DNA of 62,912 bases, counting the filler, from Salisapilia sapeloensis CBS 127946 (lineage: Eukaryota > Protista > Oomycota), in assembly GCA_023334545.1 (NCBI GenBank). It is 5 parts of 5 records of this genome, joined end to end, with 100 filler letters (N's around TTAATTAATTAA, not from the genome) between each part and the next. Parts side by side here need not be neighbours in the genome. Positions count along the whole stretch, not along the records: positions 45,808 to 50,086 come from JAADVB010000681.1; 4 more parts are not named here. One strand, written 5' to 3'. Shown here in pieces: positions 45,808-50,086 of the stretch; the first letter of the stretch is position 1, and each line of letters starts with the position of its first letter. Made by a program: the position numbers and the translations under genes. The notes under the pieces were generated by a model, which was given only the letters and a program-made list of their open reading frames with translations, made no database searches and was not told where the DNA came from.

Positions 45808-47271
45808 CCCATTGCCGACCATGATATGAGGCATTTGCCATCCAGCACTGTCAGTACATTAAATTTTCGCCACGCGTCGAGATGGGTTTCGCTCACGGTG
45901 CATGGTCACATTTCTGAATGCCTTAATGGTTTCTCAACGCTTACTATCCATTTCACGAGGTACCGAACGATCAAATTTTTAATAATCGCGGAGTGCTTCG
46001 TGAACGAGTATCATAGCGATGCATTTACAATCAGCCTTCTTTGCATCCGATAGGGTAAAGCCTTCGTACGTATTTGCTGTCAACTGTACATTCTTCATTT
46101 CGAAGTGAGTATCAGGGTGCTAATTTGGAAGCGGCATGAAAGCGTAGTGTCAAATCTTGAAAAAGATACGGCGGGAAGCACTGCTTGCGTGCTTTACGTA
46201 CCGCCTTTAAGCATGGTCTAGAATGCCGTCTGCTAGGTATCATAATGTACCTTGGGCAGAAAAGCAAACGATGTAATTAAACGCTCAGAGGTTTGTGATG
46301 GTACGATCGCAATCGCATTCTTTGCATGCCTTTAAAGTATTTAAGCGAGCGGTGTCGATCCTTTGCATCAGAGTCACAAACTCCTTAAGATAGTAGATAT
46401 ATCTGATAACCAAATGATATCGCATCACGTTGTCCACTTTATGTAGCCCGCTTCCTCAATTGCATGCATCTTTGTAACTTCGGAGGGACTAAGGTAGAGG
46501 CTCATCACCCTGAGTTCCTGGCAATGCAGATCGCAGTACTATCAGATTACTTAAAACGCTTTCTTGAACTGGACTATGAGTCCCTTGTACATTGCCATGA
46601 CCAATACGATGGTACAAAGATTGTAGTGACAATCACGAAATGGATGCAAATGAACATGGCAGTATATATTATCAGAATTGTGCTTCTCAAGCCGACAGAC
46701 ACCTCAGCGTTATAGTCTATTGGGGGTGGGCTACTTTGTGGTAGCAGTGAATATAAAAGCGCTGCACAAGGAATTAGACCTGGTGCAGTTTCCGGTAGAT
46801 ACGAAAGAGCTGCATTACTGGTAATCTGGCGCGGAGACTCTTTGCGCCCAAATTGATACGCATACTCCCACTTTGGTCCTATGTGTCTTATGCACTACTG
46901 CTTAGTAGTTTATCCTTTACGGATTTGATTACCTCTATCACTGGGTGCGCTCAATGTTTTAAAATTATATGTGCTCTCGTTCCATGGCGAAATCTTTATT
47001 TCTTGGCGAAAGTTAGATCAGGTTCTCACATCTTGTTGATAACCAGTATAATCTACACTTACAGAGCCAAATTTCCATTCACACTTATAACCGACCTGAA
47101 AGCACTCACAAGACTTCGTGCTGTGACCTGCATTAGAATGTACAACCGAATCGAAACCGAGGAACAACACTAATCAACTCAAGAAAACGCACAAAGAACC
47201 GTGTGACCAGATCTTCCCGATTTCCTCGCAGGTTCAAACACAAAATCGAATTTGATATCAACCAAGTAGTG

Positions 47272-48174
47272 ATGACAGAGCAATTCTACTACGCAGTCGC
47301 ACGTGGCCGCACCGTTGGCGTATATGACACCGAGGATGAAGCGAATCTCCAAGTTCGTGAATATCTCGACGCACTCCACGAAAGATTTCTGACGCGTAAG
47401 AAGGCCGAGCAATTTGTTCGGGAGAATCGCGTTTCTCCAACTCCTTCACATGAGGACGATCAAACACCAAATTCTCCTCTCGTAGAAAATCAAGCATCAT
47501 CCTCATCTATCGAAGTATCTTTGGAAAATCTGCATTTAGAAGACCACAAGGATTCACAGCCTATTAGGGACTCAAATCTACATGAAAACGGCGATGTAGA
47601 CACGCATGAAGCATCCGATTCTACCATTAATTTTACTTTTGACCCCAGCCGAACGGAAGCAAACGAGATACCAGAAAGAAATCTTGAAGATCCGGCAGAC
47701 CCACACGAAATCGTCGCATTTACACATGGAAGCGCTCCGCATAACGGTGGTCCTAATGCCAGAGCTGGCTATGCTGCCATCTTCCCACAGAACGAAGACT
47801 GGAATGTTTCTGAGCCACTTGACGGTCGACGGACGAACAATCGGGCACACTTAACTGCTGCCTTGAAAGCTTTGGAACGAGCGAATGAGAAAGATCCGAG
47901 ACAAGCAAAAGCCCTGCGCATCTTTACTCCCTACAAAAATCTGGTTACGGCCATGACCGGATGGGTTCAAGGTTGGATTAAAAGCAATTGGATCGGAAGT
48001 AAGGGTACGGAGATTATAAACCGAGACCTTTACGAGCGTCTACTAGCTGCAAGAGGAAGTCGAAAAATTGAATGGTGCTATGTGGGTCAAAATGATAACG
48101 AAAAGCCTTACAATTTGGAGCGGAACAAGATGGCATTAGAAGCTGCAAGACAAGCCGCTAAAGCACAAACTTAG
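47272..48174 (+). CDS. RNase H1 homolog (Cauli_VI/hybrid-binding domain + RNase H fold) lacking catalytic residues, 300 aa
   Basis: N-terminal YYAVARGRTVGVY...AEQFV; RNase H scaffold motifs F-T-x-GS..NG...AG, TNNRA, WVQGW...NRDL. Acidic catalytic positions are replaced by H, H, P and L. Confidence 0.85.
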   Translation: MTEQFYYAVARGRTVGVYDTEDEANLQVREYLDALHERFLTRKKAEQFVRENRVSPTPSHEDDQTPNSPLVENQASSSSIEVSLENLHLEDHKDSQPIRDSNLHENGDVDTHEASDSTINFTFDPSRTEANEIPERNLEDPADPHEIVAFTHGSAPHNGGPNARAGYAAIFPQNEDWNVSEPLDGRRTNNRAHLTAALKALERANEKDPRQAKALRIFTPYKNLVTAMTGWVQGWIKSNWIGSKGTEIINRDLYERLLAARGSRKIEWCYVGQNDNEKPYNLERNKMALEAARQAAKAQT

Positions 48175-48578
48175 TGAATGAAATGAAAACAGTTCGCATT
48201 TGGAAAGACATCCTTGTTAAACTTGATACAATCGTGCAGAGCAGCTTGCTATATCTTAATGTAGCCGCAGTAAATGTCTAAAAAGCGCATTGAATAAGCA
48301 CATCTTTTAATCTATCGCTGCCCTTGCAAGCGAAACTTCAATCAACCCAAGTCGCCCGCCTTGATCACGTATTGACTGACTGACCGGTACAATCATGTTC
48401 TGCCTGGTAGAGTGATGGTGGTGATGCTTACAAATCTAAAAGGTCTAGGTTAGCACTTTCCCACCAATACATAGCCTCCGATCATCCAGCTCATAAAATC
48501 GCGGAAAGGGTTATGTAGTGATCGCTTAATCATCTTTTGACGAACAACCGATCTAATGTCGAATGGACGCAGTTTAAA

Positions 48579-50086
48579 ATGGGCGGCCTGACCCGGAAGT
48601 CGTTACCTTCGGGACGCAATGGCAGCAAGGACGAAAAACTGCCATTGCTGCAAGTGAATGCAGTGTCATCGAAGGAAACTTCGTACGTGGAGGAAAAGTC
48701 CAAGGATGAAGGGCTTGGACATACTTATCCGACGAAGGAAGCTGGTTGGGTCAGCAGCGTCTTCTTCTCATGGGTCACACCACTCATGCAACTTGGCAGT
48801 GAACGTACATTGCAGCATGAAGACTTGTACCAGCTCGACCCACCGAATCGTGCTGCGAACGTCTCGTCTGACTTCCAAGAGGCATGGAAGCAGGAAATCT
48901 CAAAAGCTCCTGCCAGCCAAATGAGTCTCATTCGAGCTATTGCTAGAACGTTTGGTGGCCAAGTGCTGCATGCTGGTGCTCTGAAGGTCATCCATGACTG
49001 CCTCCAGTTCGTAATGCCACTTATGATCCAACGCATCATTGCGTTCTTAAAAGACCCAGACGCACCTCTCTCCGAAGGCATCCTCTACGCTTTCATCGTG
49101 TTTGTCGCTGGCATTGGTCAATCTTTTTCTCTTCGTAACTACTTTTTCTTGTGCTACGAATCCGGCGTTCGCATTCGATCAGCCACTTGTACGGCAGTGT
49201 ACCGCAAGTCCTTGTCTTTAGCAACGAGTGCTCGACAGAAGCGTACGTCTGGTGAGATTACCAACCTCATGTCCGTCGATGCACAGAGACTTCAAGACTT
49301 GCCGACTTATGTGAACAGTCTGTGGTATTCACCATTCCAGATTATCGTGTCTTCCATCCTGTTATGGAATCAGATTGGCGTCGCAACACTTGCCGGTATT
49401 GGTCTCATCCTCGTGATGGTTCCTGCCACTGCAGGCGTCGCTATGTTCATGCAGCGTTTACAGAAAGCTCTCATGAACGTCAAAGATAGTCGGCTTAAGA
49501 TTTGTGGTGAAGTGCTTTCTGGCATCAAAGTCATCAAGTTCCAAGCATGGGAAAACAGCTTTACCAAATCGGTCATGTCTTACCGTTATGAGGAGCTAAA
49601 GAAGCTACGCAATTACATGTACGCACGTGGTGGCATGATGAGCTTGTTCATGGGCATTCCTGCATTCGTGACTGTGGTCAGTTTCGTCACGTATGTCATG
49701 CTGGGCAATCAATTGGAGGTAGGTACAGCCCTGAGCAGTCTGGCGCTGTTCAACATCCTTCAATTCCCTCTTATGCAGTTCCCGCAAGTCATCAACTCCG
49801 TCGTGGAAGCTGGTGTCAGTATGAATCGTTTGAGTGCCTTTTTGATGGAGGAGGAGCACCAGAAGGTTGGCTCGGGCAACTTGACGGAAGTCGGGATCGA
49901 GGTGAAGGAAGCTGACTTTGTCTGGGACAGCGACCCTGCTCAAGGGCAGGAAGGCGAGACGACCGAGTCGGCCAACACGGACTCGGAAGAAGGGGCCAAG
50001 ACGCCTGTGCTTCGTCAGATCTCTCTGAGCGCTCGTGCTGGAGAGCTCATTGCAGTCGTTGGCCACGTCGGATCCGGCAAGTCCAC
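48579..50086 (+). CDS. ABCC/MRP-type ABC transporter, 5' part (TMD1 to Walker A), truncated by the gap
   Basis: FFSWVTPLMQLG, GEITNLMSVDAQRL, KVIKFQAWE, Walker A GHVGSGKS running into the Ns. No TMD0; N-terminal EKLPLL dileucine-like motif. Confidence 0.92.

Follow-up and report, generated by a model that had tools for sequence, protein, structure and literature searches.

An RNase H1-like gene of Salisapilia sapeloensis with every catalytic residue replaced in an open reading frame: a candidate pseudo-nuclease

RNase H1 is regarded as a single, universally active enzyme, and its dead forms are known mainly as laboratory tools. The human enzyme RNASEH1 (PDB 2QK9 and 6VRD, and 3BSU for the hybrid-binding domain, HBD) consists of an HBD, a flexible linker and an RNase H domain, and the same arrangement is found in the product of an RNase H1-like open reading frame (ORF) located at 47272-48174 (+ strand) of a 62,912-nucleotide stretch of DNA, filler included (hereafter the window), from the oomycete Salisapilia sapeloensis CBS 127946 (GenBank assembly GCA_023334545.1), in the piece 45808-50086 which comes from record JAADVB010000681.1. 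This product, referred to below as the query, differs from human RNase H1 in having H, H, P, N and L at the catalytic sites and Glu at the HBD positions of both W43 and K59, in lacking an N-terminal targeting extension, with the HBD starting from residue 5, and in carrying a 5-residue insert found in its subfamily. To judge from its residues, the query is a candidate pseudoenzyme of a well-known family.

Two other described systems may be set beside it. The connection (tether) domain of retroviral reverse transcriptase (RT) was reportedly recognised by Malik and Eickbush in 2001 as an RNase H fold whose catalytic residues were lost and which was retained for a non-catalytic role. This RT domain, unlike the query, sits within a polyprotein next to a newly gained active RNase H; it lacks an HBD and comes from the retroelement branch of the fold, not from cellular RNase H1. 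The engineered inactive RNase H1 (D210N or similar), which serves as an R-loop probe, likewise combines an intact RNase H1 binding surface with the absence of catalysis, and catalytically inactive RNase H1 is known for specific binding to RNA:DNA hybrids (PMC8266564). The laboratory D210N probe carries one substitution and an intact HBD, whereas the query has lost all five catalytic residues as well as the HBD Trp, and its binding to hybrids is a prediction.

The ORF is intronless and ends in a stop codon after 300 codons; the 300-codon frame had been pointed out in an earlier note on this DNA made from the sequence alone. The HBD, of the Cauli_VI type (aa 5-52; 47284-47427, +), was assigned by Pfam, by alignment to the human HBD and by column counts over 183 related HBDs, with PF01693 (RNase H1 N-terminal domain) matching aa 6-48 (E 1.2e-10; 41.9 bits with a cut-off of 21). 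The RNase H-like domain (aa 146-296; 47707-48159, +) was assigned by Pfam, by a MAFFT alignment with 158 homologous domains, by AlphaFold and by Foldseek, with PF00075 (RNase H) matching aa 146-296 over profile positions 3-140 of 141 (E 2.6e-17; 63.7 bits with a cut-off of 25.8). The region between the two is an acidic Ser-rich linker (aa 53-145; 47428-47706, +), which was read from the translation, lies outside both Pfam matches, shows no detectable homology to relatives and has no secondary structure in a single-sequence AlphaFold model, the whole of which is poor (mean predicted local distance difference test score, pLDDT, of 38). The best solved relative of the ORF product in a phmmer search against the PDB is human RNase H1 (6vrd; E 7e-24), and the identity between their catalytic domains is about 31%. 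The depth of the DNA run over the ORF is 39.5, which is that of the single-copy flanks, and the locus can be classed as a single-copy, intronless gene of RNase H1 descent.

All five catalytic positions of the enzyme (EC 3.1.26.4) are changed in the query. The four acidic residues of the human DEDD tetrad are replaced by H152 (CAT, 47725-47727) for D145, H193 (CAC, 47848-47850) for E186, P220 (CCC, 47929-47931) for D210 and L289 (TTA, 48136-48138) for D274, and the flexible-loop His, human H264, is replaced by N274 (48091-48093). Conservation was assessed on the top 150 matches of an exhaustive search, which gave 158 aligned domains, including 122 with an intact DEDD tetrad; each of the four tetrad columns is 100% conserved in these 122 homologs, and the loop column is His in 98% of them. 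A pairwise HMMER alignment to the human enzyme pairs D274 with N285; this pairing was rejected, as the insert-bearing relatives give L289 instead. The nearest relatives carry a 5-residue insert immediately ahead of the last catalytic motif, and the assignment of D274 to L289 is held to be right because the W-N-D-x-A-D of the relatives pairs, in the MAFFT alignment with the 158 domains, with the R-N-K-M-A-L of the query, in which Asn and Ala are kept.

Re-reading of the sequence agreed with the earlier note on the codon changes at the D/E/D/D positions and their coordinates (47725, 47848, 47929 and 48136), on the change in the loop at the position of human H264, and on three of the acidic-site changes requiring two or more nucleotide substitutions, the minimum being two for E to H, two for D to P and three for D to L. 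The note had also maintained that these changes are not sequencing error, and such error is indeed excluded because four separate runs from two studies agree across the gene, their gene contigs showing zero differences.

Columns at least 80% conserved in the 122 DEDD-intact homologs were defined as conserved, which gave 28 columns, 5 of them catalytic and 23 non-catalytic. The query retains 21 of the 23 conserved non-catalytic columns versus 0 of the 5 catalytic ones (Fisher p 2e-4), and the two non-catalytic columns changed are S to Y and V to I. The conserved columns which it retains include human N151, T181, N182, W221, W225 and N240, and the residues at the positions of human R179 and S233 are identical as well (R and S). 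In the paper on 2QK9, R179, T181 and N240 are reported to make the phosphate pocket, and N151 and N182 to read the 2′-OH groups of RNA. Type 1 RNases H pick the DNA strand by means of a conserved phosphate-binding pocket, and W221 stacks on deoxyribose (PMC8960830). The RNase H-like domain of the query is basic (net charge +7, pI 9.8), as in the active relatives; its basic protrusion contains fewer Lys and Arg residues than that of the relatives. The catalytic loss is, by this comparison of columns, selective, with a pattern beyond chance and nearly all the other conserved columns kept.

An AlphaFold model of the RNase H-like domain made with a 111-row alignment has a pLDDT of 95.2 and a predicted template-modelling (pTM) score of 0.91, and the best matches found for it by Foldseek in the PDB are human RNase H1 (template-modelling score, TM, 0.83-0.92; root-mean-square deviation 1.5-2.5 Å); the single-sequence model mentioned above (pLDDT 38) was discarded in favour of this alignment-based one. 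The RNase H fold, in which helices flank a sheet of five strands and a basic protrusion is present, is, as modelled, retained in the query. An AlphaFold model had been proposed as a check in the earlier note, and the one obtained superposes on human RNase H1; the claim made there of a selective inactivation with the fold kept is upheld by the column contrast, the AlphaFold and Foldseek match and the open frame.

The HBD presents a different set of changes. Its scaffold columns are kept in the query, and the residues W43, K59 and K60 of the human HBD, which contact the DNA strand, correspond to E21 (47332-47334), E37 and R38 (47380-47385 for the latter two), with H36 at the position of F58. Among the 183 related HBDs, the W43 column contains W in 155 and E in none, the K59 column contains E in 12, and the F58 column contains H in 17, H being common there in oomycete sequences. 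The loss of the Trp (W43 to E) is the sole truly unusual HBD change in the query. The earlier note had pointed to both the W to E change and a change of the KK pair to ER; the two are present, but the latter is milder than was implied there, since R is conservative and E is found in 12 of the 183 HBDs.

The exhaustive search was made over 1.84e9 cluster representatives and returned 5488 matches, the best of which has an identity of 43% over the matched stretches, while the best identity over the trimmed domain alignment is 45%. A word-index protein search with the ORF gave 3 distant matches only and none to itself, a scan of the Joint Genome Institute (JGI) metagenomes gave partial matches at 32-37% only, and neither the 300-aa product nor a 323-aa product starting from an upstream GTG corresponds, by exact look-up, to a called gene. 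Of the orthologs and paralogs which the earlier note had suggested looking for, no ortholog was thus obtained, but related tetrad-less copies came to light in Phytophthora and Globisporangium.

In the tree of related domains the terminal branch of the query amounts to about 1.2 changes per site, so the frame has stayed open in spite of a long divergence. Neutral drift was simulated for a 300-codon frame with substitutions only, indels being uncounted, and counting them would cut survival further; at amino-acid divergences of 20%, 30% and 45% the frame remained open in 3.75% of the runs, 0.55% of the runs and 0 of 2000 runs, respectively. Substitution-only neutral drift would almost never leave the frame 47272-48174 open. 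Drift which had reached all five catalytic sites would be expected to close the frame and not to spare 21 of the 23 conserved non-catalytic columns.

The nearest proteins to the query belong to a subfamily distinguished by the 5-residue insert, which includes sequences from Thraustotheca, Peronosclerospora and Aphanomyces. The tetrad is lost in 34 of the 155 related domains in the tree, among them Phytophthora nicotianae PPTG_06018 (P0070; found in many strains), P. lilii (P0052), P. megakarya (P0085), P. pseudosyringae (P0108) and Globisporangium ultimum K3WDB6 (P0086). These tetrad-less oomycete proteins resemble the query in belonging to the insert subfamily, in their layout of an HBD and an RNase H-like domain and in keeping N151, T181, N182, W221 and W225; unlike the query they keep the HBD Trp, and they are only 31-41% identical to it and share no common catalytic replacement with it. 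A quick tree placed the query within an all-dead clade of 11 rows, as sister to row P0009, whereas in a careful tree, built after masking of the catalytic columns, it branches close to the subfamily base, next to a DEDD-intact row. An ancient loss shared with the other dead copies had been considered and was dropped with this move to the subfamily base. The catalytic loss of the query is probably independent of that of these oomycete proteins, and the query, given its place near the subfamily base, could be its own lineage's RNase H1 copy. The careful tree requires 7-8 changes of catalytic state, at least 3 of which are forced by well-supported branches.

Selection in the Phytophthora dead clade was estimated on the genes of P. 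cactorum, P. idaei and P. nicotianae, which are syntenic. The omega values for P. nicotianae versus P. cactorum or P. idaei are 0.35-0.42, with bootstrap values of 0.22-0.63 which never reach 1, and on these estimates the clade is under purifying selection; taken with the closest pair, which is discussed below, they show that selection can preserve dead copies for long periods, and that such copies can also decay. A literature search of incomplete coverage found no publication dealing with RNase H1 pseudoenzymes or with dead copies of the enzyme in oomycetes.

A few observations concern the membership of this subfamily and the structure of its genes. Although mostly oomycete, it also holds rows from Rozella allomycis (P0005) and the chytrid Geranomyces variabilis (P0008) and two rows (P0010 and P0011) from the assembly of the liverwort Calypogeia fissa; several of the Rozella, Geranomyces and Calypogeia rows carry two or three HBDs. 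The tetrad-less gene of P. cactorum (L006:3001-3936) has part of an HBD in a shifted frame, and that of P. idaei (L008:2600-3654) has an HBD upstream, in a frame other than that of the annotated start. The P. nicotianae gene (L010:3001-3882) adjoins Cauli_VI and RNase H-like genes and looks like a member of a tandem family.

Transcription at the locus was assessed from contigs of four runs. In the DNA run, which is possibly the source of the window, a single contig of 3705 bases crosses the gene at single-copy depth. The runs X2, X3 and X5 come from another study of the same organism; their RNA status was guessed by software and their contigs carry no strand. They cover 46874-48141 (X2), 47103-48171 (X3) and 47153-48196 (X5), with zero differences from the window. 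The region 46094-46808 is uncovered in all three, and 48239-48524 is uncovered in X3 and X5 and has a depth of 3-5 in X2. The RNA-like depth is 55-270 over the RNase H1-like gene versus 3-14 over the ABCC-type gene downstream. The locus is regarded as transcribed because the RNA-like contigs are bounded by the gene.

Two short segments of the linker region are skipped in some contigs of the RNA-like runs, and neither joint is present in the DNA run. The first skip, of 63 nt (47519-47581), is found in X5 contigs and has CT..AC boundaries on the + strand, which are GT..AG on the - strand, as expected of an antisense intron; the second, of 51 nt (47621-47671), is found in X2 and X5 contigs and is likewise GT..AG on the - strand, a second antisense intron. 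Introns of the sense strand were rejected for both joints, as the boundaries are CT..AC and no shift yields GT..AG or AT..AC, and template switching is an unlikely source, given that the sides of the joints share only 0 and 1 nt. The antisense strand contains no ORF longer than 90 aa even when spliced and has no Pfam match. The most plausible source of the joints is the splicing of an antisense transcript which spans the linker region and has no coding capacity; transcription of the locus is therefore antisense at least in part. Both intron lengths are multiples of three, perhaps by coincidence.

Sense expression of the ORF is nevertheless likely. The points in its favour are all weak: the unspliced forms are deeper, the X3 contig is unbroken over 47103-48171, and the depth in X2 and X5 climbs toward the sense 3′ end. 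As regards the RNA check which the earlier note had proposed, contigs bounded by the gene are present in three RNA-like runs, but both spliced joints are antisense. An 11-codon upstream ORF (uORF; 47138-47173, +) was read from the sequence ahead of the gene; it would lie in the leader only if sense transcription begins upstream of 47138, and the starts of the X3 and X2 contigs would allow a leader containing it.

The explanation we lean towards, with confidence a little short of even, is that the query is a maintained pseudo-nuclease which binds RNA:DNA hybrids without cleaving them. A protein of this kind would be incapable of cleavage and could dock on hybrids via the surface of its catalytic domain, thereby shielding them from active RNases H or marking them for other factors, in the manner of the engineered D210N RNase H1. 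The HBD probably contributes little affinity, and because of the W43 to E change the binding would be expected to be weaker than that of the enzyme, or differently targeted. The retained contact residues and the basic domain favour a hybrid reader or antagonist among the possible functions, and W43 to E weakens that option.

Several observations weigh against this explanation. The HBD is without its key Trp, a change to Glu which is unique among the 183 related HBDs, and the retained contact residues are the most conserved columns of the family, so that they may serve folding and not binding. AlphaFold run on mostly active homologs is blind to destabilising point changes such as D to P. An ortholog was found in none of the collections searched, though the host's own proteins are absent from the protein databases. 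The GC content at third codon positions (GC3) of the ORF is 0.40, compared with an intergenic GC of 0.42-0.43 and a GC3 of 0.59 in the ABCC gene, and the ORF shows no codon bias. For the closest Phytophthora pair, P. cactorum versus P. idaei, omega is 1.4-1.6 (bootstrap 0.55-7), and the HBD is frame-disrupted in both, which shows that such copies can also decay. Finally, the RNA status of X2, X3 and X5 is a guess and both joints are antisense, so the RNA may be partly or all antisense.

A broader version of the same idea, which may hold but which we regard as doubtful, is that oomycetes and their relatives repeatedly turned RNase H1 into non-cutting hybrid binders, of which the query would be an independent and expressed case, protecting or marking R-loops or retroelement and viral replication intermediates, serving as a natural equivalent of the laboratory dead-RNase H1 probe and antagonising active RNases H.

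The competing explanations differ in how much of the evidence they account for. Maintenance of the protein for a role independent of hybrids, either as a protein scaffold or as a protein that binds some other nucleic acid (double-stranded RNA, for instance) and for which the RNase H fold is no more than a frame, seems rather unlikely. It would accord with the uniqueness of W43 to E among related HBDs, with the long acidic linker, which could be an interaction region, and with the relatives' basic protrusion being richer in Lys and Arg than that of the query, but the query keeps all the residues for 2′-OH reading, for the phosphate pocket and for stacking on deoxyribose, none of which a mere scaffold would need, and the domain is still basic. 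We consider it quite unlikely that the gene is a decaying or functionless RNase H1 duplicate drifting freely, its open frame and transcription being residual. Against such drift stand the conserved columns, of which the query keeps 21 of the 23 non-catalytic but 0 of the 5 catalytic, and also the simulation, since loss of five sites by drift implies that about 30% or more of the residues have changed and the frame then survives in no more than 0.55% of simulations; moreover, the domain still scores 63.7 bits against Pfam RNase_H, and the sequence is identical in the runs of two studies. Decay would on the other hand fit the GC3 at noncoding level, the lack of an ortholog in the collections searched, the antisense spliced RNA overlapping the locus, the omega of the closest Phytophthora pair with its disrupted HBDs and the lost HBD Trp.

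The remaining two explanations concern the RNA and the active site. That most of the RNA from the locus belongs to a spliced, non-coding antisense transcript, with the ORF expressed little or not at all, is judged decidedly unlikely. Such a transcript would suit the two joints, which have GT..AG boundaries on the - strand, do not occur in the DNA run and have 0 and 1 nt shared across them; it would also suit the extension of the X2 contig 400 nt upstream of the ATG and the absence of a long ORF, even spliced, and of a Pfam match on the - strand. Yet the unspliced forms are deeper, X3 is one unbroken contig (47103-48171), the depth in X2 and X5 climbs toward the sense 3′ end (depth being weak evidence), and an antisense RNA is compatible with a sense mRNA. 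That the protein is still a nuclease or other hydrolase, its active site rebuilt around, for instance, a metal held by His152 and His193, is very improbable. The two His residues do stand at the D145 and E186 positions, which are adjacent in the RNase H active site, but Pro and Leu occupy the two remaining ligand positions, Asn replaces the general-base His, the His/His pair occurs in 0 of the 158 homologous domains, and the other dead copies vary at the catalytic columns, as unconstrained sites would. No RNase H is known to work with a His/His site of this kind.

If the preferred explanation of a maintained, hybrid-binding pseudo-nuclease is true, cells would possess, in a dead RNase H1 maintained in nature with its binding surface intact, a factor which stabilises or reads hybrids and does not remove them. 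This would have a bearing on the regulation of R-loops, the replication of organelle DNA and conflicts with retroelements and viruses. Copies without the tetrad recur in oomycetes, a group that includes major plant and animal pathogens, and the database label 'ribonuclease H' is functionally misleading for them; they would make up a small, unstudied pseudoenzyme family, to which the query adds one clean and intact example.

The piece 45808-50086 contains two recognisable genes, both on the + strand: the RNase H1-like ORF and, after it, the first part of a gene for an ABC transporter of the ABCC/MRP type. No Rfam matches were found in this piece, and its flanking ORFs have no Pfam match. The ABCC gene begins at about 48579 (48579-50086, +) and is cut by the end of the piece; it includes an ABC_membrane match (E 3.6e-38) and the beginning of ABC_tran, and no intron is present in the 1.3 kb lying under an RNA-like contig. 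The fragment is 50-57% identical to proteins of Phytophthora, Pythium insidiosum, Saprolegnia, Aphanomyces, Thraustotheca and Achlya, with all else more distant, which by itself points to an oomycete or a close sister lineage about equally remote from Peronosporales and Saprolegniales. The low GC3 of the RNase H1-like ORF compared with that of the ABCC gene (47272-48171 vs 48579-50084) is at odds with the higher RNA-contig depth over the former.

The other end of the piece, 45808-46100, has a summed depth of 527-667 in the DNA run versus 39.5 elsewhere in the piece, that is, about 13-17 times higher, and is represented by many short contigs which branch into unrelated continuations; it has no Pfam or Rfam match. 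This segment is a dispersed repeat located about 1.2 kb upstream of the RNase H1-like gene.

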